From assembly GCF_001194135.2 (NCBI RefSeq), contig NC_068985.1, positions 103,912,823 through 103,954,879 of the forward strand: a DNA stretch of 42,057 nt. Reading direction: 5' to 3'. The stretch comes from Octopus bimaculoides (taxonomy: Eukaryota). Made by a program: the position numbers and the translations under genes. Within the stretch, counting starts at the first letter, position 1. Every line of letters begins with the position of its first letter. The notes beneath the pieces are model-generated. The model was not told where the DNA came from. It worked only from the letters and a program-made list of their open reading frames with translations, and made no database searches. This document shows, piece by piece, positions 9,232 through 33,177 of the stretch.

Positions 9232-9884
9232 TCAATAGTATGTTTGTGTATTCTCTTCATTGAAAAGGCTTGATACATCTAGATAGGAAGCATTCTGATT
9301 GAAGTGTTGCTCCAGGCTGTAACAAGGCTGCGACATACTTGGAATATAGGATAATTTTTGTTTCTTACTGGTCTGCAGAGGTGGTGAATACTCAGGTAGC
9401 TCAGAGCCATAGGGAGAGGATGTATTCAGTGGTCTTTTACTATTGAAAACTATACCTGATGAAGTGCTTTGCATCGATGAAGAAGGAGACGATGAAGAGG
9501 CTGGTGTTACAGGCATCGTGGCAGGGTAACCCGAAATATCATACGGCTGAACCATGGCTGTTGATTCATCAGTTTCCTTATTCTTTGACTGATGGTTTGA
9601 ACGGCTCGATGATTTCAGCAACTCATCAAAATTGAATTTGTAAGTTGCTTTCTTTCCATGGATTTTATGTACATAGTTTTTATCGTAATAATACCGAATT
9701 GCGCGGGAGAGCTTCTCATAAGTCATCTGTTTGCGTCGCTTACGTTCACCCCATCGCTTAGCTAACTCTTCTTGGTTCAGAATAGTGAAATGGCCTTCAT
9801 CTCCTTCCCAACGAATGCAATTACTGTTTGTTTTGTCACACAGAAGCTTAATTAGGAATTGCCACAACTGAATATGTCCAGACT
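9232..9884 (-). CDS. ETS-domain transcription factor, terminal coding exon (ETS domain ~9628-9882 plus Ser/Pro-rich C-terminal tail)
   Basis: Translation SGHIQLWQFLIKLLCD...WGERKRRKQMTYEKLSRAIRYYYDKN...YKFNF has the three conserved Trp and the KLSRxxRYY recognition helix of ETS domains. Pyrimidine tract and acceptor ttttcttttcaataatag|AG at 9885; stop at 9232-9234. Confidence 0.97.
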
Positions 9885-10721: not shown

Positions 10722-10781
10722 CTGGAATATGTGACATCAATTGTTGGAACGTCATGCCACAGATCTTGTCAGGACTTTCTT
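10722..10781 (-). CDS. ETS gene exon, 60 nt, phase 1-1 (E)ESPDKICGMTFQQLMSHIP
   Basis: Acceptor ttttttaatttcag|, donor CCAG|gtaagg; G+AG junction gives Glu in frame with the ETS exon; resembles the ERG/FLI pre-ETS motif DPYQILGPTSSRL. Confidence 0.9.
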
Positions 10782-10872
10782 CTGAAATTAAAAAAAAAAA
10801 AGTAATCATGTTAATTAATAAAAGCAAGTGCAAAATTATTAAATTGTTTTTGAATTTTAATTTATGTATTAA

Positions 10873-11093
10873 CCCTTTAGTATTTAAACTGGCCATATCC
10901 GGCCAAAAGTATTCTGCTTGTTTTATGTTCAAACTGGCCAAATCTGGTCTCTCACACCAACCCTACAATATCGTTTTAAAAATTAACAGCTACCTCATCA
11001 AAATCTCATAGCTACAAGATAATGCATGATTAGTTCAAAACAATGTGGATGAAAAAACATTAATTTTGGCAGAATAATGCAAACACTAAAGGG
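10873..11093. mobile_element. piggyBac-type MITE
   Basis: 13-bp TIR CCCTTTAGTATTT / AAACACTAAAGGG (1 mismatch) flanked by TTAA at 10869-10872 and 11094-11097. Confidence 0.85.
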
Positions 11094-11164
11094 TTAAATA
11101 ATAATCTATATAGTTTTTTCCTCTTTTGAAAATACAGTATTGTACATAATTCATGGAAGCAGTT

Positions 11165-11330
11165 TTTTTTTTGTATGCAGCTGTGACTGTGTGGTTATAA
11201 GAAGCTTGCTTTCCAGCCATGTGGTCTTAGACTTGGTCCCACTGTCTTCTACAATACCCCTAGGCCAACCAAAGCTTTGTGAGTGAATTTGTAAGACAGA
11301 AACTAAAAGAAGCCTGTTATACATTATATA
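11165..11330 (+). mobile_element. SINE family 1, 5' part
   Basis: CTGTGTGGTTATAAGAAGCTTGCTTTCC...GGCCAACCAAAGCTTTGTGAGTGAATTTG similar to 17071 and 23362 copies. Confidence 0.7.
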
Positions 11331-11371
11331 TATAGGGTTCAAATTGTACAAAAAAAAAAAAACAGAAGACA

Positions 11372-11490
11372 GAGACAGGTGAGGGGACAACGAACAAGGT
11401 GTATTAATTCGATGCTCAGGAAAAATAGAAGAGACTTCGACATTTCGAGCCTATGCTCTTCTACAGAAAGGAATGAGGAAAGAAAACCGA
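11372..11490 (+). repeat. Dispersed repeat, homologous to 5460-5590
   Basis: Direct sequence similarity to the reverse complement of 5460-5590. Confidence 0.6.
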
Positions 11491-13212
11491 GAGAAAATAC
11501 ATCTTGTCTTGTCATCACTTTGCAGCTGTAAATGAGCATCACCATCAGACAAGCGAGGTTGTTTATTTCCACTCTTCCATGGAGAAAATATCTGACCACG
11601 AGAGATAACCTTGCTTCAAAACAGATTAATGTTGGCAAGAGGAAGGGCATCCAATCATAGAAAATCTGCCTGAACAAATTCTGTCAGACAGAATTTGTAG
11701 TGGTGGTGGTGGTGAGGATGATGATGTTGATGATTGATGCATGTGTGAATGTATAAATTTTGGGAGACAATAATATTTTACAGTACTTTTAGAATTGTTT
11801 CTGAGACTGTGTAAGCTATTGTGTTGATAATTTCATAATCATAGCTTCAGGAAAAAGATGACAATAGCTACTCAAGTTTATATCTAAATTATTTATGAAA
11901 CACACAAGTAGATACTTGTCTACAATTATCATTAAAGAGTATCATAGCAAAGGGCAGCAGAACCAGTAGAGTAGCCAAAAAATAAAACCCCACTAAAACA
12001 TCTTTCCTACAAACTTGTCAGTGAAGTACTCAATACCAAGTCAATTAAAATCTTGATGAATTTAACAATTGCCAGATTTTTGTACCATTGCAATTTCTCA
12101 TAATAATCACATATATCTGCCAAATGTAAAAAGTGTATCTCCTAAGATAGACTTTCTCTTCAAAACCAGTAACTATTTTAGCTGAGAACTGCTACGACTC
12201 TTTTATAAAACATAAGTGAATCATACACAACTCTACAACTAACCTATCAGGGATGTAGCAGATCTTACTTATACAAACATCCAACTCTGACTGGTTAGCA
12301 AACCTACACTCCCTTAACACATTAACCTAATCACTCCCACATAAGTAATTCTGTATAAGCTCTTTGTCATTTCTATAATTGATACAACAGTTCCTGCTCC
12401 CTAGAGCTAGCAAATCCTATAAGCTATTAAATTCTTAGCTTCATTCTTTTAATATTGTCTGTACAGTGCCTTCATCTAAAACACTAAAAAACTTCAACTA
12501 AAACTGTTAATGATTTAAAATTGAAGTTTACAGTAAGCTTTTTCTTTATTTTCTTACTTTTGTTTTTGCCAGAATATGAAGATATTAGGAATGAAGAAAT
12601 ATCAGTCTTCTCAAGATTCCACTTTATAAATGTTTTCTCTATTCTAGCATGGGTTAGATAAATATATTATCGAGGCATTGTTTACAGCTAGATGCTTTTC
12701 CTGCTGCTAACCATAAACAACTATATTATCAAGGTGTTGTTTTGTAACCTGATGTCTTTCCAGCCCCAAAGTAAGAGATGCCTTAATCCATGCATCTTTG
12801 AAAGCTCTTAGCAAATAGATAATTTAGTGACAAGGCAATAACAACAAGGTCATAACTAATTTATTATATATCTCTCAAATTTATATTTGTATATATCTGA
12901 GCAACAAATTGACAGGCAGTGCATTCAATCAATGAAGTAACATCCTATTAAACTAATGACTCAGAAAAAAAATCGGAAGCCAGTTTGAAGTTAGAAGTGG
13001 CTACTATATGACAATTATGTCCTGTTACATCAATAAAACTGAAAGGATGGTATTCAGTGTCAGATGACTCAGTTCAAATTAACTTTTACAGAACTCTGTT
13101 CAATACTTTGCTCTAGTAAGCTGCAGAGATCAGATAGAAATGCATACCAAAAGGACAGTTACTTCCACTACAGCTACTACTACTACTACTACTTATTATT
13201 ATTATTATTATT

Positions 13213-13420
13213 GAAAGTGGCTAGCTGGCAGTATTGTTAGCACACCAGGCAAAATGCTTAGCGGTATTTCATCTGAGTTCAAATTCCGCTGAGGTTGACC
13301 TTGCCTTTCATCTTTTCGGGGTTGATTAAATAAGTACCAGTTATGCACTGGGACCGATGTAATCAACGTACTCCCTTCCCCAAAATTTGAGACCTTGTGC
13401 TTCCAGTAGAAAGGATTATT
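13213..13420 (+). mobile_element. SINE family 3 (GCCTTTCATCCTTTCGGGGTCGATAAAATAAGTACCAG central domain)
   Basis: GCTGGCAG..GTTAGCAC..GGCAAAATGCTTAGCGGTATTTC..GAGTTCAAATTCC head, central domain and TTA tail; related copies at ~13715-13905, 24296-24410, 24560-24700, 32035-32190, 34095-34260, 34735-34820, 39920-40140. Confidence 0.75.
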
Positions 13421-15449
13421 TTTATTATTATCCTTTCATGATCAAGTACAAGGATCAATATAATCGACTGGCACCCTCATACAAAATTGTAAGCTTTGTG
13501 CCTGTAGTAGAAAGGATTATTATTATCATGATAATAATAATAATAATAATAATAATTATTATTATTATTATTATAAACAGATCTAAAGCCCAAAGAATTG
13601 AACTAGGACCAGCCATACTGATATTTAGAAGATATAATTAAAAAAAAAAAAACATGTGGAAAACCAAATGAAAAACCAAAAAAAGCAAAGAAGCAGATTA
13701 ATATTAGAAAATGACCAATAAGGTGGTGAGTTGACAGAGTTGGTCGCATGTTGGGCAAAATGCTTGCTAGCATTTCGTTCATCTTTACGTTGTGAGTTCA
13801 TACTTTTGAGGTCGTTAAAATAAATACCAGTTGAGTACTGGAATTGATTTGATTTACTTTTCCTGTCCACCACAACTGCTGGGTTTTTTTTGCCAAAATT
13901 TGAAACCAACAGGAAAAACTGAGCTTAATGCTAGCCATAAGATAGCAAGGTATAAGTACACAAGCCACCCCAATTCCAAACTACAGTTTCGATGTTTCGT
14001 TAGGAAAACAAATGGAAGAGAACTCAATTGCAGAATTGAGAAAGAGGAATGTCAAAAAGAGGTAGCAACCAAAAGCCCATCAATATGTTACATTGTCACA
14101 AAGAAAATATATAATCAGCTTTCAGTATATTAGGGATACACATTTTCTCTGTTCCTGATGGACGGAATACAATGAAATCCTAGTAGGATTTGATCTTAGG
14201 CATTCAAGGTATATACGGCAATATGTAATATCTATCACAATTCTGTGGTAGCCAAATTACAAGCTGAATTAATAAGGGCCATTATCGTGTAAGTTATAGT
14301 ACGCTAGTAAGAACAGAGTGACGTCCCTTGGTTATGACATACCAACCATCATTTGATGAGTCAAATTGTAACCACAGTTTCGTGTTTCTTCCGTTTTTTT
14401 CTTTTTATTATTATTATTATTATTATTTATTTATTTAACATCTCTCTTTCTTCTCTTTTCATTCTCACACTCCCTTATCAGTGACAACACGGTGGCTTTT
14501 GTTCCATCTACACCCACGATGTCAGCAAAGAAATATTTTTACTTTTATTTTTATTCTTTTTTTTTCCCTCCAACAGATACAGTTGTTTTTAAAAAATCTA
14601 TTTACTCAATTCACTGTGTGTGTGTGTGTATCAGAATGTCTAAATACTGAAAATATTTTTTGTGTACCAGAGAAATAAATAAGTGAAGTGTACGTGAATG
14701 CTTGTACGTCTGTGTGTGTATCTGTATATTTACATGTATGTGGGCGCGGGTGATTAAGTACACTTGTTTAGTCTCGGGTCAGCCCTGATCGAGTAGACAG
14801 ACCTGTGATAAAAAGCTTTTCAGCCGTGACCATCCTGTTTATATATATATATAAATACAACGGGGTTAGCGCCCGATAGAGGGTAAAGTAAAGACATCTC
14901 TGACAGCTCCCACAACAAAAATGTCTTAATTATTTGTTTCATGACTCACTGCGCACTTATTGACAATAACTTAATGACAATAACAAAGGATTATCGCCTT
15001 ACACAAGCCTAAATTAAAATCGCAATGTAACAAAATCTTATAATGTCACATTAGTAAACCCGGAACCAATTCGGAAATGCTGTGCCCTTTTACACATTAA
15101 ATCCAACGTGGGTAGCGAACGCCTTCCCATTCATCCATTATTTACTATGGTCCTGTTTGCCGAGGACTACATTGTCCAATGTTCCCTATCTTATTTAAAA
15201 TAGGTGTGATCTGAGAGAAGTTTGGCTGCTATTTTTAGCTGGTTGGGTGAGTATGTAGAAGCCCTGTCGTTGACAGGAAGACAATATAGAAACTACCACA
15301 CACCTACATATGTACGTGCGGACACACACACGAACACGTGCTTATAGAAACAATCTATTGATGCCTATCAAGTTGATAGACTCAAATTTTAGAGAGTAAC
15401 AGGCAAAAATTATCGATACAATTATTGCACAAACACATACACATATGTT

Positions 15450-15502
<53 letters not shown>

Positions 15503-15929
15503 TTGTATGTATGTAAATAAATAAATATATAAATATATATATATACATACATGTACACATACATGCAACTAAACACACACGTTGCTAATTGATATTAAAG
15601 AGATAAACAGGTGTTTCAGAATGTCTATTGTACAGACATTGTCCATAGACGTTGACAGTCTAATCTATGTGATTAAGCTACCTTCAACCTATATTTAGAC
15701 ACACCTACATATTGGCAGAACAATGGATTTCAACTACACAGACCGGAACAACATACAATTCTATTTCATCATAAAAAAAAGGAGAGGACAAGTTGAAATA
15801 ATGTAGCTTCCTACCGTAACACTATTCTTGGAAAAAAAAGACAGATGATTGTGTTTGATCATAGGTTTGTTTGATATCAGAGACAACTCGGGGTTAAACA
15901 ATAACAATGCACACACACACACATATATA

Positions 15930-16110
15930 TATCATCATCATTTGATATCTATTTTCCATGCTGGCATGGGTTGGACGGTTTAAAAGTGCTGCCAGGTCAG
16001 AAGACTGCACCAAGTGCAACTGTCTGCTTTGGCATGTTTTCAATAGCTGGATGCCCTTCCTGATACCAACCATTTTACAGTGTACTGGGTGCTTTTAACA
16101 TAGCATCACT
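15930..16110 (-). mobile_element. SINE/LINE 3' end with (ATG)n tail
   Basis: CATCATCAT..TTTTCCATGCTGGCATGGGTTGGACGG...GCTGGATGCCCTTCC; related copies at ~6125-6250, 11530-11690, 18290-18370, 21840-22030, 27960-28060. Confidence 0.7.
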
Positions 16111-16852
16111 ACCATATATATATATATATATCATGTGTGTGTGTGTAGAAATAATACATATATATATATATTTGTGGGAGAGGGGGTTCCTCTACCCATC
16201 GTTATCACGACGCAGTGAAGAGAGCAAAATGTAGTTTTACAGAAGATGAAGTGGAAACAGTTCCAGCAAGCCAGATATACTCATGTTCACAGACTTCAAC
16301 AACACCAGTCACAAGAATAGACACTTTGTGGTCACAATGTCTGCTAGAAATAGCAGCTAAATCACCCTCAAATCACATCTTACATTATTAAGAAAGGAGA
16401 GGAGACATTGGATTGTGTAACCCTGGACAAATTTCTAGAGAGATGGACAAGGATGGAATGCCACCTTGGTCATATGCCAGATCAATCAGAGGTGATATGA
16501 GACTAAACATCATGGATATTACACAAAGCAATAAGTTGTTGGTTTGTGTGGTGTCCACATGCTAAATATAGCACCCAAATTACCTCCAAACCACACTTTA
16601 CCACCAGGCACTTTGGATCTTTGGATAAAGACATCTTCAGTACATCATTTAAAAATAATAAGAGATCATAAGCCCGTGAGGTCAGAGTTCTGCTCTTAGA
16701 GATAACTAATTAAGCATTCTGAGGTGTGAAAATACATTCTAATTGAAATCATTTGATGATGACAATGATGATGATATCACTATGGCAACAACATCATTCA
16801 TCATGATGATAAATATTAACAATCAATGCGGAAGATTGATGAGTGAACTTAC

Positions 16853-17026
16853 CAGAAATTTTCTTACACGATCTTTGTTTCTTGTTTATTACTGTGTTGT
16901 TGGTTTGGCTGCAGTTGTTGCTGCCGCTGAGAATGTTGTTGGTATGGTTGCTGTTGTGGTTGTTGTTGACATTGCTTACATTGTTATTTTCGTAAGATGG
17001 TGATGGAGTACATCTTGATGTGCTAG
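16853..17026 (-). CDS. ETS gene exon, 174 nt, phase 1-1, Asn-rich with basic patch
   Basis: Acceptor tttttgttttttgttacag|, donor TCTG|gtaagt; open frame (T)STSRCTPSPSYENNNVSNVNNNHNSNHTNNILSGSNNCSQTNNTVINKKQRSCKKIS; both junctions in frame. Confidence 0.85.
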
Positions 17027-17070
17027 CTGTAACAAAAAACAAAAAAAAGATATATATATGTATATATATA

Positions 17071-17202
17071 GGCGCGGGAGTGGCTGTGTGGTAAGTAGCT
17101 TGCTTACCAGCCACATGGTTCTAGGTTCAGTTCTACTATAGCCTCAGGCCAACCAAAGACTTGTGAGTGGATTTGGTAGACAGAAAATGAAAGAAGCCCA
17201 TC

Positions 17203-17240
<38 letters not shown>

Positions 17241-17363
17241 GTGTGTGTATGTATATGTTTGTGTGTCTGTCCCCCCAACATCACTTGACAACCGATGCCG
17301 GTGTGTTTACATCCCCGTAACTCAGTGGTTCGGCAAAAGAGACCGATAGAATAAGTACAAGGG
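17071..17363 (+). mobile_element. SINE family 1 with internal (TA)n(TG)n
   Basis: Head GGCGCGGGAGTGGCTGTGTGGTAAGTAGC; body shared with 97-410. Confidence 0.8.
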
Positions 17364-17747
17364 TTGAGATTATATGTATGTGTATATGTATGTGTGTATG
17401 TATGTGTGTACATATATTCATTCGTTCGTTCCTTCCTTTGATTTTTGCATGCTAGCTTGGATTAAACGAATTGCTTTGAAAAGGAGTTTTCATTCCATTT
17501 GTCTTCAGAAGCACAACATTAAGGGACAGGTTGTTGCTGAGGAAATGATAACAAGCATTACTGCCCATAGCTTAGCTAAGCCCAGAATGTAAGTGTTCAT
17601 ACAAACACACAGGTACATGTACACTAGAGGATATTTCAGATATTGTTCTAGCAAGGAGATGATGAAGGCTGAAGAAACTAAATACAATAACAAACCATAA
17701 AGAAATATGTGGGGCAGGGGTGATAAGAGTGATACGAAGACACTTAC

Positions 17748-17801
17748 TGGGGTCAAAGAAGCTCGGGTTAGATGCCATCGAAGGTGGGTAACTGTTGTAA
17801 G
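17748..17801 (-). CDS. ETS gene exon, 54 nt, phase 1-1 (T)YNSYPPSMASNPSFFDP
   Basis: Acceptor ttgttctatctttttcag|, donor CCCA|gtaagt; multiple of 3, in frame. Confidence 0.85.
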
Positions 17802-18796
17802 CTGAAAAAGATAGAACAAGACAGTAAATATCATGTAATACTTATAATAATTTGGCTGCAAGCATGGGCGTGTGGCTAAGAAGCTTGCCTTCCTAATTTT
17901 GTGGTTTCTGGTTCAATCCCACTGAGCAGCATCTTGGACAAATGTCTAGGCTGTGAGTGGATTTTGTAGATGGAAACTGCAAGAAATCTACCACAGCCTG
18001 TCATGTGTGTGTGTGTGAGTCCCCTTTACTTGACATCACATGACAATTGTTAATGAACAAGTGATGCTGTTTATTTCTATCTAGTCTTTCATGAGAAACA
18101 CGCAAAAATATGCTAGGAAACAGAAGAGTATCATAGGCTTAAGAACAAGGGATGCAAGTGCTCCCCTAAAATTTGGTTGAGGGGAATGAAAACACTTTGA
18201 ATATCCTCTTGAAAAATTAGGTTTGCTCCTGCTAGGAATTTTGTTCTCAAACTTAGGGGAACTTAGTATTGATGACATGAAGGGTATATGGCTGCAGAGA
18301 ATCTGTCTAAAAGTACTCCATCTGACTCATGCAAGCATGGAAATATGGATGTTAAAACTATGATGATGATCATGATTTCAGGATATCATCTCACCCACTT
18401 AGTAGCAGTAAATTCAAATTTGTATCACAGAATGATGACTTTTGTAGCAAAGGAAGTACAGTGATGTCATGGAAAAGTACGTACTTGGAGAAATCAGTTA
18501 AACTAAAATTATTGAGAGTCGTGGAGTCAACAAGGAAACCTCTAAACATCATGCCTCTATTTTACCTTCTTAATATTTTTGTTACCATTTGTCACTTTGT
18601 GGATTTAAGTCTCACACACACACACATACACACACATTCAATCACTCTCTCTCTCTCTCACACACGTAAATACGTGTCCACACACCCATATATAGACCCG
18701 CATACTCACTTCCTTCATTCATTACGAGTGCAGACAATTACACACTTATATTCCATGCATACACAAATATTTAAAAAAAAAAACGTAAATACTTAC

Positions 18797-18850
18797 TTGG
18801 TGCAAAAGAACCCGTTGTGGATGCAGGCGAAGAATTGGTGCTTCTTGCTG
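18797..18850 (-). CDS. ETS gene exon, 54 nt, phase 1-1 (S)ARSTNSSPASTTGSFAP
   Basis: Acceptor tttatgtttctcttctacag| (tandem CAGCAG), donor CCAA|gtaagt; in frame. Confidence 0.85.
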
Positions 18851-19669
18851 CTGTAGAAGAGAAACATAAAAGGCATTGTAAACCAAACTGCATCCTTCAA
18901 ATACATTGAAGTTACATATCAGATATAAAGGACATTTGTGAGGAAGCAATAGGTTACTTTACTGTCGATTCAAATGCTATGCTATCTCATATTTCACACA
19001 CAAACACAGCTGTGTGTTTGGTGGTCTGCACCAGAAAGATGTGTATTATTTTTTTCTTTTAAAAAGTGACGGAAAGAATACATTGGAGAGTGGGGAATCA
19101 ACGTTTCAGACAGCCTTTCTTCAGATTGCATATGACAGGAAGGAGATAATAGAAAGGCAGCGGAGTTTTATATTATCTATGTTTGAGAAACTGGCTGCAG
19201 TTGATGGGGAACACGAGGTGTAAGTTTGGATATATGGACAGGAAGAAGTGGGAGAGAGAAACTGGGTGAGAGAAGGAGAAGGAAAGAGAAATGAAATGAA
19301 AGGAAGTGGGTGATGGTGAGGTGAAGAGAAAAAGTGAGGTGGGAAGCGAGATGAATGATGAGAACGAGATGAATGAACTAAGAAGAAATGGAGGAGAAAG
19401 AAAATCCTCATTTAAACCAGTCAGGGACATAGTTCCAAGTTTGAATATGAAACATTGTTCCTTCTGTTTCTTTGAGTGCGTATGGATCTATGGATGCGCA
19501 TGGAATGGCTGGCTGGATTTTATAAGGTGTTATTGAAGAGAAATTTGTTCCCCACCCCAAAGTCCACCCCATGTCATCTAAGTCACTCACTCCGCACAGT
19601 GTATCACGATTGAGATGCACATGTCATAGGTTTGCCACCAGTGACCTAGGTTTCATTATATCTTTTATT

Positions 19670-20071
19670 TTTTATTTATTTCAGTCTTTATACTGTGGCC
19701 ATGCTGCAGCAAATGCCTTGAAGGGTTTAATCAAATAAACTGACCCCAGTGCTTATATTCTCAAGCCTGATACTTATCCTATCATCTCTTGCTCTTGAAC
19801 TGCTATGCTATGGGGATGTAAACAAACCGACACTGGTGGTCAAACGGTGGTAGGAGACAGACACAAGCACAAAGACACGCACATTTAGATACGAACACAC
19901 ACGTGTACGTATATATATGTGTATATGACAGGCTCCTTTCAGCTTACATCTAACAAATCCACTGTGGCTACCATGGAAGACATTTCCCCAAAGTGCAACA
20001 CAGTGAGATTGAACCCAGAACCATGTGGTTGGGAAGCATAATTCGTACTACACATCCATGCTTACACCTAT
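19670..20071 (-). mobile_element. SINE family 1, old copy
   Basis: Reverse complement of the family-1 head and 3' end with internal microsatellite. Confidence 0.7.
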
Positions 20072-20654
20072 ACATACAAGTATTTTAGTTTTAGATGAAT
20101 GTTTACAGATGCATGCTTTTCAAAACATGATGTAGGAAGATTGTTATTTTTATTTTCCTTCAAAGTCTTTTACATGTTACCTTATCCACCCGCTCTGCAC
20201 AGTGTGTCATGTAACATACAATGTCATTGGTTTATCACCAGTGACCCAATTTTAAGTAGGTTTCATTGTTTTAAAGACCTTTTGCAAAGTTTGAATCCTA
20301 AGATAAAGTTTAACAGAGCAAATTACCCAAAGAAAAAAATATGACTGAGTCATGTTATACATGCACATGCACACACATACACACGTGCGCGCACATACTG
20401 TCCCACCACCATTGATGGATTATATTTGTGTTGAGATGAAATAAATATTGATTCTATTGATGTCCCTTACAAAAGGACATCAAAATGATATGTGAGGTGA
20501 GATGAAAAGATTACAGTAAAAGAGAAAAGAGAAATGTAAAATAGAAAAAAAAAATTCAAAAAGAAAAGACTAAAATAGGAAAAGGAAAATGTTTAAAAAA
20601 AAGAGAATGTGACAAAAGAACATAAAAAAAAGAAAAAGACACAGCTGTACTTAC

Positions 20655-20693
20655 ATGGCATGATAGATTCCAGTGACATGTAGCAGACTGTCT
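20655..20693 (-). CDS. ETS gene exon, 39 nt, phase 1-1 (E)TVCYMSLESIMP
   Basis: Acceptor ttgtttttctcacaacag|, donor CCAT|gtaagt; in frame. Confidence 0.8.
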
Positions 20694-21232
20694 CTGTTGT
20701 GAGAAAAACAAGAGACAGAGATATATTAGAAAACGTAAGTAAGAGAGAGAGAAAGAGGAGATTGTTGTTGGTTGCTCACCTTATAACTATGTCTATGTGA
20801 GACCATCCCAAACAATGTGCTTACACTATAGGTCAGTGTTTAGGAAATCTTGAGAGACACAAACACACACACTCACACATAATCACAAATAATAGATTCA
20901 TATTCACACCTACATATATCATACTTGTATATTCTCACACAAGCTCATCTATACTCATTAGTTCACAAACACTCACACATATATATATGCATACACACAC
21001 ACACAACAAAAGTCACACAATGCTTAATTCACTCACACAAACATATACAAACGCAAAATCTCATACGCTACACATATGCACACTTACATACGTAGCTAAT
21101 TGCATCATAGACTGCATTAGATTAACAATAATAACAAAGAACAACAACAAAAATAAATGTCTGGTAAACGATGACATCACTGCATTGATTTAAGTCTATT
21201 TTCATTTCATTTATGCTTATCTCTTCCTTTTG

Positions 21233-21716
21233 NNNNNNNNNNNNNNNNNNNNNNNNNNNNNNNNNNNNNNNNNNNNNNNNNNNNNNNNNNNNNNNNNNNN
21301 NNNNNNNNNNNNNNNNNNNNNNNNNNNNNNNNNNNNNNNNNNNNNNNNNNNNNNNNNNNNNNNNNNNNNNNNNNNNNNNNNNNNNNNNNNNNNNNNNNNN
21401 NNNNNNNNNNNNNNNNNNNNNNNNNNNNNNNNNNNNNNNNNNNNNNNNNNNNNNNNNNNNNNNNNNNNNNNNNNNNNNNNNNNNNNNNNNNNNNNNNNNN
21501 NNNNNNNNNNNNNNNNNNNNNNNNNNNNNNNNNNNNNNNNNNNNNNNNNNNNNNNNNNNNNNNNNNNNNNNNNNNNNNNNNNNNNNNNNNNNNNNNNNNN
21601 NNNNNNNNNNNNNNNNNNNNNNNNNNNNNNNNNNNNNNNNNNNNNNNNNNNNNNNNNNNNNNNNNNNNNNNNNNNNNNNNNNNNNNNNNNNNNNNNNNNN
21701 NNNNNNNNNNNNNNNN
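21233..21716. other. Assembly gap inside an ETS intron (other gaps: 6269-6481, 28607-28869, 29824-30097, 33670-33679, 37296-37503, 38554-38692)
   Basis: Runs of N, mostly flanked by microsatellites or a palindrome. Confidence 0.99.
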
Positions 21717-21766
<50 letters not shown>

Positions 21767-23039
21767 ATGTATACATATATATTATATACACATAAGCACA
21801 CACTCCTGTACATATATAATATGCATGTGTGTATAAACATCATCGTCGTCATCTTTTAACATCAATCTTCCATGTTGGTATGGGTTGCACAGTTTGACAG
21901 GAGCCAAATGGCCTGGAGACTGCATCATGTTCCAGTCTCCACTTTGCTGTGGTTTCTACAGTTGGATACCCTTCCTAATGCCAACCACTATACAAATTGT
22001 ACTGAATTCTTTTTCAGGGCACCAGTGCAAGCAAACAAATCGTTTGCTTTTGTTTTTGTTTTATTAATTAATCAACTTATTCAATTCACGGTTTTCAATT
22101 AAGAGTTGTTTCAAGCTTTTATTACATCTTTAATTACTTTAATAGTTTTTTAATTCTTCCTCGTCTTTATACTAATTACAACAATGGCTTGTATTTTCCT
22201 AACGAGTATATTGGATGTCAATTGGGCCAAAGCTGTTTCTTCATGATGCAAATTGCTGTCAAATGTGGAATAAATGAGCAATGCTTATCATCCTGTTAAT
22301 TAGATCAGTCCTACTTGAGCAGACCTCTGATCAAAGGCATTTAAAGCTTATCCATCCAGTTTTGCGGGGAGGCTTATCTTTTCAAACATTGAATATTTGA
22401 AAATATTTTCTAATGTGTCATTTCTTTTGTTACAACAGTAGTACATGATGTGAGTGAAATTTGGCTGCTGTTTCTAACTGTTCCACTGACTGTAATGAGG
22501 TTTCTTTCTTTAAGCGATCAGACTTACTGAAGAGTGAAATACAACAGGGGTTTGTCCATGTCTAAATCGTTGTTTTATGACAATTAAAATAGCACATAAA
22601 CTGAACATATAAGAAGTACTTGCTGAGCGAGTTCATTCTTTCTTCAGGTTTTTATCTAAGACTATATAGTCTACGGTAGTGATTTGATGGAGATTTAGAT
22701 GCTATTTTCAGCAGGACAAGTAACTTAAGTTGAGGCTCCTTTGTTATGTCATCAAATGAGATTTGGTCACTCAACTTGATAGAGTGATCCGATGGCCTAT
22801 TACTCTAGAGTTTCCACAATTTGTTACTGGTTCCTCAAACAAGAATACACTGGATCAAGTTTCCAATTTATTCTGGGGTGATAACTGAGAATACTTTGGA
22901 GATTCTACAGAGCAACAGACCATTTATGCATGCACATGTGTGTGTGTGTAAGAGAGAGAGAAAGAGGTACACAGCTGAACAAAATTGCACTCTTATCTAC
23001 ACAAAACATAGAGGATATATATATATAAAGGTATAGTAC

Positions 23040-23093
23040 CTTGTACACTGTTTGAATACCATTCTGGTGTCTGAGCAATACTGCAGTTGGAAC
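23040..23093 (-). CDS. ETS gene exon, 54 nt, phase 1-1 (G)SNCSIAQTPEWYSNSVQ
   Basis: Acceptor ttcttcttttgtcattctag|, donor CAAG|gtacta; in frame. Confidence 0.8.
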
Positions 23094-23361
23094 CTAGAAT
23101 GACAAAAGAAGAAGTGTAAGTATTTTACCTGATACTGAAATAGTTTTAGAAATGAGGCAATTAAAACCTAAACTTATGAAACAAAGGTTTCAGAAAACTA
23201 CAAAACCACCATGTTTCCAGATGTTCAAATACATACAGACAAGGAAATAAAAGTTAATTGGTTAGGTAATGCCATTCAGAACCACAAGGAAAGAAAGTAT
23301 TTCCTCGTCAAGTTATCAATTCCAACAAATGTGTGTGCATACATACACATCTCTTCTTCTT

Positions 23362-23645
23362 TTTTTACTCTTTTTACTTGTTTCAGGACTTATTCTTTGT
23401 AAGCCTAGTACTTATTCTATCAATGTTGGAGGGGGGGGGGGGACAAACACAGACACACAAACACATATATACATATATACGATGGGCTTCTTTCAGTTTC
23501 CGTCTACCAAATCCACTCACAAGGCTTTGGTCGGCCCGAGGCTATAGTGGAAGACACTTGCCCAAGGTGTCACGCAGTGGGACTTAACCCGGAACCATGT
23601 GGTTGGTAAGCAAGCTACTTACCACACAGCCACTCCTGCACCTAT
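23362..23645 (-). mobile_element. SINE family 1, well-preserved copy
   Basis: CAGTTTCCGTCTACCAAATCCACTCACAAGGCTTTGG...GAACCATGTGGTTGGTAAGCAAGCTACTTACCACACAGCCACTCC. Confidence 0.8.
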
Positions 23646-23836
23646 ACACACATATATTATATTAACTTGAAAAATAGGTAAAGGTTAACATCAGGAAAGG
23701 CATCTGGTCGTAAAAGAATGCCTCAAAAGTATATTCAAATAATCCATGTTACCATCGAAAAACAAATATAAAAGGAACAGATACAAGAATGTATGTGTGT
23801 GTGTGTGTGTGTGCGTGTGTATAAAGTTATATTTAC

Positions 23837-23881
23837 CTGAATTGCTTGGTACTTCTGGCACTGATTGTCCACTTGACCAGG
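23837..23881 (-). CDS. ETS gene exon, 45 nt, phase 1-1 (S)WSSGQSVPEVPSNS
   Basis: Acceptor tcttgttgtttcccttgtag|, donor TCAG|gtaaat; in frame. Confidence 0.82.
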
Positions 23882-24059
23882 CTACAAGGGAAACAACAAG
23901 AGACTAATGAGTGTCAATGCTCTTTCTCCAACATTAATCATCATACTATTGGTATGATGATTAATCTCCTCCTCTCTATCACAAGTGAATAATAACATCA
24001 ACACCATCATCAACAGCATCACCATCATCATTTCCATTCTTTTTGTCATCATCATTATT

Positions 24060-24088
24060 TACTACTACTACTTCTACTACTACTACTT

Positions 24089-24158
<70 letters not shown>

Positions 24159-24247
24159 AAAAAGGGAATGTTGTATAATCTCAGATTTCCATATATGGAT
24201 AAAAGATAGGCTGGAATGTTTTACATTATAAGATGATGATAATAATA

Positions 24248-24297
<50 letters not shown>
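24060..24297. repeat. (TAC)n and (TAA)n microsatellites
   Basis: Directly visible at 24060-24157 and 24240-24297. Confidence 0.95.
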
Positions 24298-25034
24298 CCT
24301 TTCTGCTCTGGGCCTGAAATTTTGTTAGGAGAGTCTTGTCAATTACATTGATGTCAGGGGTCAACCCTGAAAGGATGAAAGGTGAAGTTAATCTCAATGG
24401 CTTTTGACCTCTTCAAGATGAAATGTTGTGAAACTTTTTGTGTAGTGTAGTAATGAATCTGCCAGAAGGACAAGACTTATGAGGACAATACAAAGACAAA
24501 TTGCTGACATAAAAGCAATGGTCATAAATTTGTGGGGGGGAAATGTTAGTTAAGTCAACTGGATTGTTTGACTGGGAGTTTAATTAACTCACAAAATATT
24601 AAAAGCTAAGTTGACTTCAGTGGGATTTGAACTCAGAATGTAAGGAGCAATAACTAAATGCTGCAAAGGCATTTTGTCTGATGATGTAACTATCTTCCAA
24701 TCCATGATAAAAGTCTGATTGTAGAAAGTATTGTTTTTATGATGCTGAATTATATAAGCAAACAAATACAATTACAGACAGAAGAGGAAGTAGAATATAA
24801 CGGATTATGATGAAATAACAACAAAAATTAATAAAGGGGACAAATAGCTATTCTAAATGTGGCCACTAGGACGAAAATAAAATCAAAATTAATGGAGGGA
24901 ATAAACAAACAAAATAACAAAAAAAGCAAAACTTATTAACCAAATAAACAAGCACAGAGCAAAAGAGAAAAGATAGGGAGAGGAGAGAAGAGAGAGTAAA
25001 GACAGAGAGAGTAAAGACAGAGAGAGATAGAATT

Positions 25035-25087
<53 letters not shown>

Positions 25088-25216
25088 AAAAAAACAAAAG
25101 AGAACAAAACTACGAAACAACCAAAATATTTCTGCTCTAAACACAGAAATTTAGTTCATACCTGACCCATGAGAAAAGACCAAAGTTCACGACAGCAAAC
25201 CTGTTCTTTGCCTAAC

Positions 25217-25270
25217 TCGTTGGACAGGTGTGTAGAAATGGAACGCTTTGCCCGGAGGCTTGTGGACTGT
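25217..25270 (-). CDS. Candidate cryptic/alternative 54-nt phase 1-1 exon (Y)SPQASGQSVPFLHTCPT
   Basis: CTAAC branch-point motif ~40 nt upstream with no intervening AG, acceptor tacag|, weak donor A|gttagg; 93-nt intron from the 25364 donor; in frame. Confidence 0.3.
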
Positions 25271-25363
25271 CTGTATACATATGTGGCCAGAATGGTATGA
25301 AGTGGTTGTTAGGTAGAGCGTTGGTCAGAGGCTAGTTTTGGAACGAGTGCTGGAAGTACTTAC

Positions 25364-25450
25364 ACTGGATTTGGCAGTCCAGACCGGGTCTATTCTCGCT
25401 TTTAACAGACGAGGAAAAAGAAGACACCGAACTTAAAGTTGTCAAGGTGG
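25364..25450 (-). CDS. ETS gene exon, 87 nt, phase 1-1 (S)TLTTLSSVSSFSSSVKSENRPGLDCQIQ
   Basis: Acceptor tctcttttaatttatattgcag|, donor CAGT|gtaagt; read-through past the donor hits TAG at 25334-25332. Confidence 0.82.
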
Positions 25451-27390
25451 CTGCAATATAAATTAAAAGAGAAAGAGGAATTAAAATCATGACAATGTTA
25501 AGGAGACTTCAATTTCAAATTACCATATATGCTAGAACATAAGGTGATTGGGTGTATCAGATTGCTCTGTCCCCAAGTCTTTATTTATAATGTAGGTTTT
25601 CAATTATATTCACTGTATAAAATTAACTAACATTATTTCACAATGGGTTACAAGTGTTAATTTTGGTTCAATGTATGAGAAATTTTCACAAAGTGTTGAG
25701 ACACGTGAGAAGGTGTCACCTTGAACCTTTTCAAGAAATCATGTATTTAAATATTCAAAAGTACCGGTAACTTCAAAGGTTAATGTGATTGGCTTGATTA
25801 ACACACATAACTGACCAATCATATTGGGCTATTGTCTGTAAACAGCTCACAAACTCTTGGTATGTTAATTATGTTAATTAAATGCTACTAATGTACAGCT
25901 GCCCTGAAAGAAACAGGATAAACAGAATGTAACATAGGATCCCAGGTTACTATATACCAATCACTGTAAACAGTGATTGGTGTACAGTGGCCAGGTTTGC
26001 AGTATTGTTGTTTTAAGGTGTTAAACAGCTTACAATTCTTGCATATCTTTTAAACATAACCTTACAATTAATCCAGCTTATGAGACATGCAAAATATTGA
26101 GTAGTAGAATTACAAGTACTATGCGGATGTCTTATGCTGTTCTCCATCACGAATGGCAAAATTTTAAAGCACAGGATGTCAAGATACAGATTATATAATT
26201 TGCGTTTAACTCTTGATACAAACCCACCTGAGACCACCCCCTCGGAGCTATGGAAACATATGTCTTGTGTTAAAGGGAATGAAATTAAAACTTTCATCAA
26301 AATTTTATTATTATTAAGCTGGTTTTTGGAACATGAATATAAAAATAATTTTACTAAATTCATCCTGATTTTCAAAATTAATTTCTACCATACAGAATTG
26401 AATTTCAACATAATCATGAGAACAAAAAGGTCAAGAAAAGCTCTTTTTTTTTTGTGGGGACGAGTAAGGTTCAAATTTCTTATCTATATACAGATGTATT
26501 TCATTAACTATTATTCTTGAGAAGTTTGGTAACAAAGGGACAAAGAGCTCAGGATGAGACGGTAAAAATCTCAGTTCTTATGATTCAGTCATTGTATTAC
26601 TACAATAAAGGAGGTCAGATGATACTCAGAAAGTAGAAATAGGATCAAAATACCAAAAGTTTATAAATGAAATGTTATCAAACAGGGCTTTTACAATGAA
26701 TTCTTGTGTAAGCGTTACCTGCTTTGGAAATGTTAGTTACACTTCCTGCTGTGTAAAGTGAGATGTGAAACTTGTCCTAGTTGTGACAGTATTGCACAAT
26801 AGAAAAATGACAGGCATTTCAATGGCTGACCTAGGGCACCAGTTTATCAAATGTTTTTTAACCCTTGGCAGGATATCAGCTCAGCACTGCAAGTTAACGA
26901 AACAATTTGTCAGTCATATACAGCAACACTACCAAAAACAATGGCTTAACCTCCTCATCATCATGTGACCTACTGAGCAGGAGTACTCATTTTACTGTGT
27001 TCACACTGAGTGAAAATAGACAAATTTTCTGAATGTGATCTCATGCCACAGTATTTGGACAGCATGATCAACAATAAAAACGAGGCTGCCCATGGCTAGA
27101 ATAATGCCAACCAGATCATCTTTTAATCCATTATCATCTCCTTATCACATGGTTTTACATTTTACACACAACAGAGCTGACTAAAAATACTCAAACATCA
27201 CCACCTCCATCACTACAACGCTCCCATTGCTTATATTTTATATTGCTTTCTTTGTGTCCTTTTCAGTAAATACCAGCTTCAAGAAACCTCTTACTTAACT
27301 TACATGGCAGTGGCAAATACAGACAGCATATGATTAAATAAAGTAAATAAAATTTAATTAAATAAACGAGTAAATTAATTATTAACTCAC

Positions 27391-27711
27391 ATGATTCCCT
27401 TCTAATTATATCTTGAATATCTTCCCAGCGTGCTGCCTGATCTTCATGAGAAAGTTCTTGGTGATGAAATTTAGAAATGATTTTATGTTCCTCATAGCTG
27501 GGAGGTGGAGCCCGAGGTAGATCTAGGCAGTGGTCAGCAGTTTCTATATGAAAAGCACTGCCCGGAGAAGCCATCAGAGAGAACGGAAGATCAGTCAGTT
27601 TAGAAGGAACTGTTTGGTCATCTTCTAAATGATGCAGGTCCATGGATTCTAATCCAGCCTCATCACTTATACTGCTGCGAAGGCCAAGGACTTTGTCAAA
27701 GAATTTTTTCT
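27391..27711 (-). CDS. ETS gene N-terminal exon, 321 nt, phase 1-1 (ATG at 27643 may be the start, or the frame continues upstream)
   Basis: Acceptor ttttttcatgaatttccag|, donor TCAT|gtgagt; open frame KKFFDKVLGLRSSISDEAGLESMDLHHLEDD...APPPSYEEH...RWEDIQDIIRRES. Confidence 0.88.
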
Positions 27712-28606: not shown

Positions 28607-29455
28607 NNNNNNNNNNNNNNNNNNNNNNNNNNNNNNNNNNNNNNNNNNNNNNNNNNNNNNNNNNNNNNNNNNNNNNNNNNNNNNNNNNNNNNNNNNNNNN
28701 NNNNNNNNNNNNNNNNNNNNNNNNNNNNNNNNNNNNNNNNNNNNNNNNNNNNNNNNNNNNNNNNNNNNNNNNNNNNNNNNNNNNNNNNNNNNNNNNNNNN
28801 NNNNNNNNNNNNNNNNNNNNNNNNNNNNNNNNNNNNNNNNNNNNNNNNNNNNNNNNNNNNNNNNNNNNNTATATATATATATATATATATATATATGCAT
28901 GTATGTATTCTTTTGATCATTATATGCACGAATATATAAACATATAATCCTTTATCCTTTATAAACATGCATATAAACACACATTCATATATGCATATAT
29001 ACTACATACATACGTGACTATGTGATTCAAATACTGCAGTATAACACACACACACACACACATACACACACACATTATGTGATGTTTGGAAAAGTTGAAT
29101 GTTTAACCAGTCAGTGATGGTTAGAAAGAAATTAATAGCAAGAAGAGGAAAAGGAAAAGATGAAACAAAAGAGGGTGGGAGTGAACTTGCTTATTTTTCT
29201 TCCTTTTTTTTAAATTTCATTTTTATTTATTTATTTATTTTTGTACTTTTTGTCTCTCTGCTATCAGAATCTCTACTGTTTGCTGACTTTCAAACATTTG
29301 TCTTCGCATCAGCTGAGGTTAGAGATCAGAACTGGTTCTATTTACATTTTTTAGTTTAACTTCAGTTTCGAGACTCTGTGAGACTCTGTGGTGGTGGGGT
29401 GGGGTTATTTAAGAAAAGAAAAAAATATTTAGAAAAACATGAACAAGGAATAGAG

Positions 29456-32735: not shown

Positions 32736-33177
32736 CCTTTTACTTGTTTCAAGTCATTTGACTGCGGCCATGCTGGAGCACCGCCTTTAGTCGAACAAAT
32801 CGACCCCAAAACTTATTCTTTGTAAGCCTAGTATTTATTCTATCGGTCTCTTTTGCCAATATATATATATATATATATATATAAATATATATTGCCAATT
32901 ATCTTGGGCAAGTGTCTTCTACTATAGCCTCGGGCCGACCAAAGCCTTGTGAGTGGATTTGGTAGACGGAAACTGAAAGAAGCCCGTCGTATATATGTAT
33001 ATATATATATGTGTGTGTATGTGTTTGTGTGTCTGTGTTTGTGCCCCCAACATCGTTTGACAACCGATGCAGACCGATAGAATAAGTACTAGGCTTCTAA
33101 AGAATGAATCCTGTTGTCGATTTGCTCGACTAAAGGCAGTGCTCCAGCATGGCTACAGTCAAAAGACTGAAACAAGT
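32736..33177. mobile_element. Two family-1 SINE pieces in inverted orientation (minus 32736-32859; plus 32903-33177)
   Basis: The 3' halves are reverse complements of one another (e.g. ACTTGTTTCAAGTCATTTGACTGCGGCCATGCTGGAGCAC vs GTGCTCCAGCATGGCTACAGTCAAAAGACTGAAACAAGT). Confidence 0.8.

Follow-up and report, generated by a model that had tools for sequence, protein, structure and literature searches.

The eight short exons ahead of the ETS exon in the analysed stretch of Octopus bimaculoides DNA are real, already-annotated coding exons, numbers 3-10 of a known RefSeq gene model, and are not new. We consider it probable that the gene is an ERG-class gene without a PNT domain, that it has inherited a linker with phase-1 introns throughout, that the linker exons are constitutive on the present record, and that the stop codons formed when several exons are skipped together are incidental. 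A sequence-only reading of the same DNA had described a combinatorial cassette; its exons, their symmetric 1-1 phases and their likeness to vertebrate genes stand, but combinatorial use and an off switch built on multiple skips are not supported. The result chiefly re-derives the existing RefSeq model and attests to the accuracy of that reading, and the all-phase-1 layout is common to vertebrate FLI1 and ERG genes.

Linker exons of an annotated gene

Coordinates are positions in the window, that is, the whole 42,057-nt stretch of contig NC_068985.1, which is 100% identical to CM046605.1 of assembly GCA_001194135.2; all exons of the gene lie on the minus strand. The exon coordinates, lengths (87, 45, 54, 39, 54, 54, 174 and 60 nt), phases and junction bases given by the sequence-only reading were all reproduced to the base. 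In the order of transcription, the exons are as follows.

27391-27711, minus strand: E0, coding exon 2, 321 nt, phase 1-1, with the start codon of isoform X2 at 27643
25364-25450, minus strand: E1, 87 nt, phase 1-1, last base T
23837-23881, minus strand: E2, 45 nt, phase 1-1
23040-23093, minus strand: E3, 54 nt, phase 1-1, donor GTACTA
20655-20693, minus strand: E4, 39 nt, phase 1-1, first dinucleotide AG, last base T
18797-18850, minus strand: E5, 54 nt, phase 1-1
17748-17801, minus strand: E6, 54 nt, phase 1-1
16853-17026, minus strand: E7, Asn/Ser-rich, 174 nt, phase 1-1
10722-10781, minus strand: E8, ETS N-terminal flank PDKICGMTFQQLMSHIP, 60 nt, phase 1-1
9232-9884, minus strand: terminal coding exon (from the list of open reading frames and Pfam) with the ETS domain, the C-terminal region up to the final ...TYY and the stop codon

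Every linker exon has canonical splice sites, with a pyrimidine tract and AG at the acceptor and GT at the donor; the donors are mostly GTAAGT-like, and the weak GTACTA donor of E3 is kept in three octopods. From E0 (27391) through E8 the last bases are T, T, G, G, T, A, A, G and G, and from E1 through the ETS exon (9884) the first dinucleotides are CC, CC, GT, AG, CA, CT, CT, AA and AG. The spliced coding sequence is open over 1473 nt (490 aa) and equals RefSeq XP_014780457.1, "FLI1-like" isoform X2, exactly; the sole difference between isoforms X1 and X2 of O. bimaculoides is the 5' exon. All ten coding introns are in phase 1. The acceptor of E0 reads ...TTTCCAG/AG (a slash marks a splice junction), a tblastn match of isoform X1 spans 27712-27383, and the exon encodes a conserved PPxY-like motif, APPPSYEEH, which is common to a bryozoan ast-1-like protein.

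By exact spliced mapping, O. sinensis and Argonauta hians both have these 11 exons with all introns in phase 1, and where exon lengths differ they do so by multiples of 3 only; E0, for instance, has 321 nt in O. sinensis as well and 324 nt in Argonauta. An octopus transcript contig (L014) runs from E2 through E8 into the ETS exon with joins at the predicted boundaries, and an unspliced squid contig has the E0 donor in the same position and phase as in octopus. In decapodiform transcripts the length of E7 is reduced.

Exons of 39-60 nt read by eye carry an a-priori risk of being chance open reading frames beside chance splice sites, and this risk is the sole argument for regarding them as prediction artefacts. 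Against it stand the exact match to a RefSeq protein and the orthologous exons found both in transcripts and in the genomes of three other octopods; the exons go far beyond chance because they belong to a real gene. A variant of the same explanation, a gene broken by a gap, concerns the following feature.

21233-21716, no strand: assembly gap of 484 N inside the E3/E4 intron

This gap, unchanged in the public chromosome-level assembly GCA_001194135.2, lies 1324 nt past E3 and 540 nt ahead of E4. It is intronic, and both of its flanks are colinear with the ungapped intron of O. sinensis, where the missing piece comprises about 306 nt with (TA)n and (GA)n runs. The colinear flanks and these repeat runs rule out an exon hidden in the gap, as does the direct joining of E3 to E4 in orthologous proteins and in the octopus transcript. 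The chance that the short exons are artefacts, or that the gene is broken, is negligible.

Membership in the ERG class

The Pfam Ets domain (PF00178) was found with E = 6.7e-30 and 103.7 bits over model positions 1-80 of 81, and likewise in the 537-aa isoform. The best PDB matches of the ETS domain are ERG, FLI1 and FEV (118-128 bits), as against 103 bits for ERF and ETS1, about 85-90 for ETV1/4/5 and about 87 for ELK, and E8 aligns to the pre-ETS segment of ERG, PYQILGPTSSRLANPG, in PDB 4irh. A phase-1 intron lies right before SGHIQLW (G/AG) and is preceded by the 60-nt E8, which is the arrangement that marks the ERG subfamily. By its sequence, the gene is thus a PNT-less ERG/FLI1/FEV-class ("ast-1-like") ETS transcription factor. 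It differs from ERG and FLI1 in the PNT (SAM) domain (PF02198), which Pfam did not find in either isoform but which fish, insect and sponge relatives carry, and this absence is why we do not assign the gene to FLI1 proper but class it as an ERG-class orthologue or paralogue of the PNT-less, FEV/ast-1-like kind; vertebrate FEV is not known to carry PNT either. A further difference is that, among the BLASTP matches, the octopus ETS domain is only about 40-50% identical to non-cephalopod members of the family, which is low for an ERG orthologue.

In its architecture the gene resembles ERG, FLI1 and FEV in three respects: a run of short phase 1-1 exons lies ahead of the terminal ETS exon, the last intron, in phase 1, falls within the codon that directly precedes SG(Q/H)IQLW, and a short penultimate exon encodes a flank of the PYQ.LG...L..P type. 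The last six introns of a teleost fli1-related gene are in phase 1, the final one at the identical position before SGQIQLW (G/GT), and a 48-nt phase 1-1 exon encoding PYQTLGLISSRLANP is the counterpart of E8. The proposal that the phase-1 run is ERG/FLI1-like and ancestral is therefore supported: vertebrate genes of the ERG family share both the run and the place of the last intron, so the all-phase-1 layout was inherited from that family. Two aromatic residues end the protein in both groups, YY in the cephalopods and FY in the fish fli1-related protein; human FLI1 and ERG likewise end in YY.

The same reading had called the run expanded in octopus, and this is plausible, given nine symmetric internal exons as against five in the fish fli1-related gene. 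Further support comes from a protein comparison with Watersipora subatra ast-1-like isoform X2 (P0016), a bryozoan protein that also lacks PNT, has APPPSYEEH upstream of the ETS domain and shares with octopus K..MTY(D/E)KLSRA in place of the usual MNYDKLSRA; the distance from PPPSYEEH to the ETS domain is about 60 aa there, whereas it is about 230 aa in octopus. We propose that the eight short exons encode a Ser/Thr/Asn/Pro-rich linker (52% S+T+N+P) between a PPxY-like N-terminal region and the ETS domain, with E8 as the N-terminal flank of the latter. We infer that this linker is probably disordered, and its function likewise. The all-phase-1 property would have come down from the ERG family and been retained while the cephalopod linker grew, a growth that may have been aided by exon duplication: E5 and E6 have 27 of 54 ungapped identities (P = 3.5e-4).

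Stop codons at skip junctions

As all of the exons are symmetric (phase 1-1), any skip preserves the frame of the ETS domain. This symmetry is a permissive property only and does not demonstrate a combinatorial programme. The sequence-only reading correctly held that single skips give sense codons alone (none of the eight makes a stop) and that joining E1 to E4, or E4 to E8, makes one (T+AG and T+AA, respectively). Six further multi-skip junctions do the same, for a total of 8 of 28. When the order of the junction codons was shuffled, zero single-skip stops were obtained in 24% of trials (17% with exon1/E0 included), and eight or more multi-skip stops in 5-18%; the shuffles give no support to a non-random placement of stop junctions, the pattern being within their range (P ~0.2 and 0.05-0.18). 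The junction bases differ in squid, where E0 ends in A, E4/E5 reads C/CT and E5/E6 reads T/CT, so that the stop-forming pairs move, tracking amino-acid identity at the junctions. A "built-in off switch" is accordingly not upheld, the pattern being at chance level and its positions not conserved in squid. The multi-skip stops are an incidental product of split Ser (T/CN) and Glu (G/AR) codons.

Exon use in transcripts

All linker exons are present in every annotated protein and in nearly every assembled transcript. A decapodiform transcript with all of them (P0004) is listed in 58 Logan collection blocks, and P0049 is found on 8 more contigs. The exception is a decapodiform group (P0005; 6 contigs from at least 4 runs) in which E1 is absent from every contig; E1 can thus be dispensed with and may be alternatively spliced in some setting. 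Among annotated isoforms and assembled transcripts, covering four octopod genomes, one octopus contig and about 70 decapodiform contigs, we found no within-species loss of a linker exon, and RefSeq, ENA and clustered Logan sequences gave, with limited power, no pair of transcripts with and without an exon from one species. The protein collection contains no transcriptome-derived copy of the gene from O. bimaculoides, O. sinensis or O. vulgaris, and minor or tissue-specific isoforms are beyond its reach. A profile search with the linker alone returned no skipped isoforms, matching only P0003 and an unspliced squid fragment; as it missed known orthologues, this is weak negative evidence. In the transcripts on record, the linker exons are included together and constitutively, and we infer constitutive use in O. 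bimaculoides tissues.

All eight exon lengths are divisible by 3. Intron-flank conservation was assessed by blastn and exact-match analysis. Long conservation adjoins only E1 (downstream) and E4 (upstream), the flanks of the other exons extending over 6-56 nt; in other animals, strongly conserved intronic flanks often mark regulated exons. The block beside E4 is the following.

20694-20853, minus strand: conserved intronic block adjoining E4 upstream, an exact match to O. sinensis

With the first 2 nt of E4, it makes up an exact match of 162 nt (20853-20692), and against Argonauta its identity is 75% over 171 nt.

These observations bear on a model in which the eight symmetric exons are used combinatorially, with the E1-to-E4 and E4-to-E8 skips serving as a designed off switch through their junction stops, which we regard as very unlikely. 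It accords with the phases, under which every skip is in frame, with the identity of the T and AG/AA junction bases across three octopods, with the lack of E1 in one decapodiform lineage, and with the position of the two most conserved intronic blocks, one directly after E1 and the other directly before E4, the two exons that the T+AG skip joins. It can also appeal to human ERG, which has two in-frame cassette exons in the homologous region, exons 7 (27 aa) and 7b (24 aa) (PMC6174920). Human ERG, however, skips exons there (PMC6174920), whereas in the octopus gene no skipped isoform was seen. The many linker isoforms that had been envisaged are thus missing from annotated proteins and assembled transcripts alike, the two RefSeq isoforms differ at the 5' end only, the stops follow chance expectation, and the stop-forming pairs are shifted in squid. 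Base pairing between the block downstream of E1 and the one upstream of E4, which would loop out E2 and E3, is ruled out: the two lack complementarity, their duplex at -50.6 kcal/mol being no stronger than those of shuffled sequences (mean -51.6, z = 0.18), whereas real intronic control duplexes reach -55.4 kcal/mol. If combinatorial splicing were true, it would make the linker of an ETS factor with a neural or developmental role tunable; no support for it emerged here.

A conserved stop-containing extension of E1

Conservation downstream of E1 involves two overlapping features.

25162-25363, minus strand: E1 extension, 202 nt, from the annotated E1 donor to a downstream donor CATGGGTCAG/GTATGA, seen in L014
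25101-25431, minus strand: 331-nt perfect block, comprising the last 68 nt of E1, the whole extension and a further 61 nt past the downstream donor

The octopus contig L014, from a total-RNA meta-transcriptome, contains E1 and the extension spliced to E2. In Octopus as in Argonauta, stops interrupt each of the three reading frames of the extension, which rules it out as coding sequence. The first in-frame TAG comes 10 codons past E1 (10-13 codons in four species, Argonauta among them) and lies seven exon junctions upstream of the last junction, beyond the 50 nt by which a stop counts as premature. The GT of the downstream donor (25162) is kept in O. bimaculoides, O. sinensis and Argonauta. Over its 202 nt the extension is 100% identical to O. 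sinensis; against L014 the figure is 98.5%, compared with only 94.7% for the ETS-domain coding sequence of that contig. Exact matches between the window and the O. sinensis locus, whose mean identity is 89.7% over 29.4 kb aligned, are longest at the 331-nt block, which ends in a pyrimidine tract and CAG. Rfam gave no match at gathering score anywhere in the window and none with E ≤ 1 over 24900-25500, and the fold z-score of the E1 block, -0.59, shows no significant RNA structure.

On this evidence the extension is a candidate conserved unproductive-splicing switch. In a regulated event of the poison-exon type, the donor at 25162 would replace the annotated one, and the stop-containing extension would yield an NMD-prone or truncated mRNA without the ETS domain. 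We view such an event as possible, if somewhat unlikely. Its case lies in the L014 junction, exactly at the conserved GT donor, in the stops, of which the in-frame TAG persists across four species, and in a conservation that exceeds that of the ETS coding sequence and peaks in the perfect block. Yet the transcript support consists of one contig from one library, of total RNA rich in splicing intermediates, and RefSeq models do not contain the extension. The pyrimidine tract and CAG at the end of the block would allow the remainder to be removed as a short intron after the downstream splice, so L014 could have been caught halfway through two-step (nested) splicing rather than being a final product. 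Perfect intronic blocks of 120-160 nt also occur elsewhere, away from exons, so that an intronic enhancer is possible too. The blocks beside E1 and E4 might instead have nothing to do with splicing and serve as transcriptional enhancers, or as conserved non-coding elements of some other kind, in a developmental transcription-factor locus. This is suggested by further exact matches, 100-153 nt long, that lie in introns or flanks well away from exons (13163-13011, 41780-41643 and 7787-7665 among them) and by the lack of an Rfam match and of significant RNA structure; we nevertheless consider it unlikely, as the E1 block has twice the length of any other, begins within an exon, spans two functional-looking donors and occurs in a spliced transcript.

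A wider scheme, which we regard as possible but rather unlikely, is that an ultraconserved choice of E1 donor sets the full-length factor against a stop-containing mRNA that is ETS-less or targeted to NMD. Alternatively within this scheme, the intron would always be taken out in two steps; the CU-rich E1 and E4 blocks might, in addition, coordinate a skip of E2 and E3, with its TAG.

Implications

Ultraconserved poison exons and other unproductive splicing are known systems, as is nested splicing ("intrasplicing"); we know of no reports of such switches in cephalopods. Within this gene, the likeness to these systems is confined to the E1 extension, which is more conserved in nucleotide sequence than the coding sequence, has a premature stop far upstream of the last junction, is included in a spliced transcript and shows a pyrimidine tract and CAG abutting a GT donor. 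The extension differs from poison exons in being an alternative 5' splice-site form and no separate cassette, and the host gene encodes a transcription factor, not a splicing factor. If the switch at E1 is real, conserved unproductive splicing would control a developmental transcription factor in a mollusc. In cephalopods, the 331-nt element with its transcript-supported extension offers a concrete and cheaply testable candidate for regulated splicing, whether unproductive or nested.

Gene model and identity

When the reverse complement was read at the anchor points of the sequence-only reading, each proposed exon of the minus-strand gene proved to have a GT donor and an AG acceptor with a pyrimidine tract; the 39-nt exon, E4, which that reading had left without a coordinate, lies at 20693-20655 and is the sole candidate within its interval. 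Positions 27643-27391 (in coding exon 2, here E0), the eight linker exons (E1-E8) and the terminal ETS exon (9884-9232) together form an open coding sequence of 1473 nt encoding 490 aa. Given the canonical splice signals, the open frame and the matching exon lengths, last bases and first dinucleotides, the earlier observation of eight symmetric phase-1 exons is correct in every detail.

The 490-aa product and XP_014780457.1, annotated in Octopus bimaculoides as "FLI1-like" isoform X2, are identical, and the window matches chromosome CM046605.1 of GCA_001194135.2 at 100% identity, with the same N gaps. Isoform X1 (XP_014780456.1, 537 aa), the C-terminal part of which is the whole of X2, has an extra 5' coding exon about 6 kb past the window's right end and uses the full 321-nt E0, with its acceptor at 27711. 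The intron before E0 is likewise phase 1; phase 1 thus holds for each of the ten coding introns, and every one of the nine internal coding exons is symmetric. An ETS domain is the only Pfam match in both isoforms; a PNT domain is detected in neither. The sequence-only reading correctly rebuilt, by eye, an already known gene model, and the phase-1 layout is a family trait.

An assembly gap at 21233-21716 sits within the E3/E4 intron. On either side of it the intron is colinear with the ungapped O. sinensis intron, in which the counterpart of the missing stretch is about 306 nt with (TA)n and (GA)n repeat runs. Orthologous proteins pass from E3 to E4 without additional residues, and an octopus transcript contig (L014) joins the two exons directly. 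A hidden exon is therefore ruled out, and the frame is secure.

Conservation of exon structure in cephalopods

The O. sinensis and Argonauta hians proteins, each placed on its own locus by exact spliced mapping, gave the same 11 coding exons. In all three octopods every linker exon is phase 1-1 and the last bases are identical.

Linker exon lengths (nt) in O. bimaculoides / O. sinensis / A. hians; one value where all agree
E1: 87 / 87 / 78
E2: 45 / 45 / 54
E3: 54
E4: 39 / 39 / 36
E5: 54
E6: 54
E7: 174
E8: 60

L014, which derives from octopus meta-transcriptome SRR3401912 (described in PMC11662614), contains E2-E8 followed by the ETS exon, with boundaries as predicted. Homologues of all eight exons are present in decapodiform transcripts (P0004 is listed in 58 Logan collection blocks and P0049 on 8 contigs), and in an unspliced squid contig the position and phase of the E0 donor are unchanged. 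A truncated ORF ending ...TVQGE* would be the product expected from read-through of the E3 donor. In a second decapodiform lineage, the P0005 group, the E1 homologue is absent from six of six contigs from at least four runs (L010-L013 among them), and RES is joined straight to E2-like sequence; this may reflect exon loss or dominant skipping, which look alike in transcripts.

Two squid cluster members, P0053 and P0057, have ORFs that end inside the ETS domain (...WEGTVLTIC* and ...HGKKSNLCF*), which may indicate that decapodiforms have additional introns or alternative 3' ends; at these sites the octopod gene is uninterrupted by an intron. The O. vulgaris protein CAI9723259.1, named FEV, has all linker exons and a divergent C-terminal 50 aa, probably because its last exon is wrongly annotated.

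Ancestry and expansion of the linker

The highest scores of the ETS domain are those against ERG, FLI1 and FEV (128 bits, versus 103 for ERF and ETS1), and the E8 peptide aligns with the ERG segment PYQILGPTSSRLANPG, immediately N-terminal of the ETS domain. A teleost fli1-related protein, mapped onto its own locus, has exons of 18, 206, 167, 204, 123, 69, 48, 87 and 524 nt; its last six introns are all phase 1. The last intron (G|GT directly before SGQIQLW) agrees with the octopus intron (G|AG before SGHIQLW) in both position and phase. In human ERG this region includes two cassette exons, 7 and 7b, both in frame (PMC6174920). The proposal that the architecture is ancestral is thus borne out.

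That it is also expanded here is plausible, because octopus has nine symmetric internal exons versus five in the fish gene, its linker is longer than that of a bryozoan relative, and E5 resembles E6. The ast-1-like protein of Watersipora subatra (P0016) shares an APPPSYEEH motif and an MTY(D/E)KLSRA signature with octopus, and the distance from motif to ETS domain is about 60 aa in the bryozoan versus about 230 aa in octopus. E5 (18797-18850) and E6 (17748-17801), both 54 nt and phase 1-1, share 27/54 ungapped identities (P = 3.5e-4) and encode similar peptides (..AS..GSFAP and ..ASNPSFFDP), which suggests an old tandem exon duplication before the octopod-decapodiform split. The linker's composition (S+T+N+P = 52%) is consistent with a disordered spacer.

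The PPxY-like APPPSYEEH motif, a possible WW-domain ligand, is encoded in E0 (about 27480-27510) and is common to cephalopod and bryozoan ast-1-like proteins (P0015/P0016). All cephalopod and bryozoan proteins bearing it lack a PNT domain; together these features suggest a lophotrochozoan PNT-less ERG-class orthology group.

Combinatorial splicing and junction stops

Among annotated proteins and assembled transcripts, we found no case of a linker exon both present and absent within one species, and the annotated isoforms differ solely at the 5' end. The data at hand therefore give no support to the proposal of combinatorial linker isoforms; this negative evidence is moderately strong, as the collection has no transcriptome-derived contig for the gene from O. 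bimaculoides, O. sinensis or O. vulgaris.

The sequence-only reading also saw an off switch in the pattern of safe single skips and stop-forming multi-skips. When the order of junction codons was shuffled, 17-24% of shuffles had zero single-skip stops and 5-18% had at least eight multi-skip stops. The junction T is the first base of a Ser TCN codon, and the AG and AA dinucleotides are part of Glu GAR codons. Squid junctions (Ser after E0, A|GT; E4|E5, C|CT; E5|E6, T|CT; E7|E8, G|GA) also include stop-forming pairs, at other positions than in octopus, as expected if such pairs are incidental. Both the shuffle statistics and the squid comparison argue against design, and the data at hand do not support the off switch.

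Conserved non-coding blocks and the E1 extension

Locus identity to O. sinensis is 89.7% across 29.4 kb. The comparison with Argonauta reveals long conserved non-coding flanks only 3' of E1 (about 380 nt) and 5' of E4 (about 140 nt).

Conserved blocks, repeats and a neighbouring ORF
25431-25101, minus strand: longest exact O. sinensis match, 331 nt (68 nt at the 3' end of E1, a 202-nt "intron" stretch and a further 61 nt)
14456-14527, intron E7/E8: conserved non-coding block, 72 nt, 85% identity to Argonauta
13011-13163, intron E7/E8: conserved non-coding block, 153-nt exact O. sinensis match
29082-29170, upstream of E0: conserved non-coding block
17059-17365, 23465-23661, 32917-33113 and 13329-13419, in introns: interspersed SINE-like repeat copies
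4161-4430, minus strand, downstream of the gene: 89-aa ORF, Pfam DUF7083 (E = 7.8e-13)

E4 with its flanks (20592-20853, minus strand) differs from O. sinensis at a single position over 262 nt. About 100 nt upstream of E4 is a sub-block (ATTGTTTGGGATGGTC...AAG|GTGAGCAA) that is kept in Argonauta too and looks like a putative decoy donor. The block upstream of E0 could be an enhancer or the alternative 5' exon belonging to isoform X2. The DUF7083 ORF is probably a transposon remnant. One SINE-like copy stops about 30 nt short of the E7 acceptor, on its upstream side.

In L014, E1 is followed by exactly the 202 nt between the annotated E1 donor and a downstream donor at 25162 (25162-25363, the E1 extension), and then by E2. 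The extension-E2 junction comes after ...CATGGGTCAG; at that point a GT (GTATGA) is present in each of the three genomes. The extension is 100% identical in O. sinensis and 98.5% identical in L014, versus 94.7% for the ETS-coding part of that contig. The Octopus extension, at 202 nt, is not divisible by 3; its Argonauta counterpart is 246 nt long. All reading frames of the extension contain stops, and in four species an in-frame TAG lies 10-13 codons past E1.

These features fit a conserved unproductive isoform made through an alternative 5' splice site, a candidate poison extension. They also fit an intermediate in which the intron is removed by nested splicing in two steps: the E1 block ends in a pyrimidine tract and CAG, so splicing out the downstream part would turn it into a complete short intron. 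An enhancer overlapping E1 is a third possibility, because introns contain other perfectly conserved blocks, of 120-160 nt. Within the E1 block we found no match to Rfam families, no significant fold and no complementarity to the block upstream of E4. The conserved E1 extension is the sole element here that deserves experiment.
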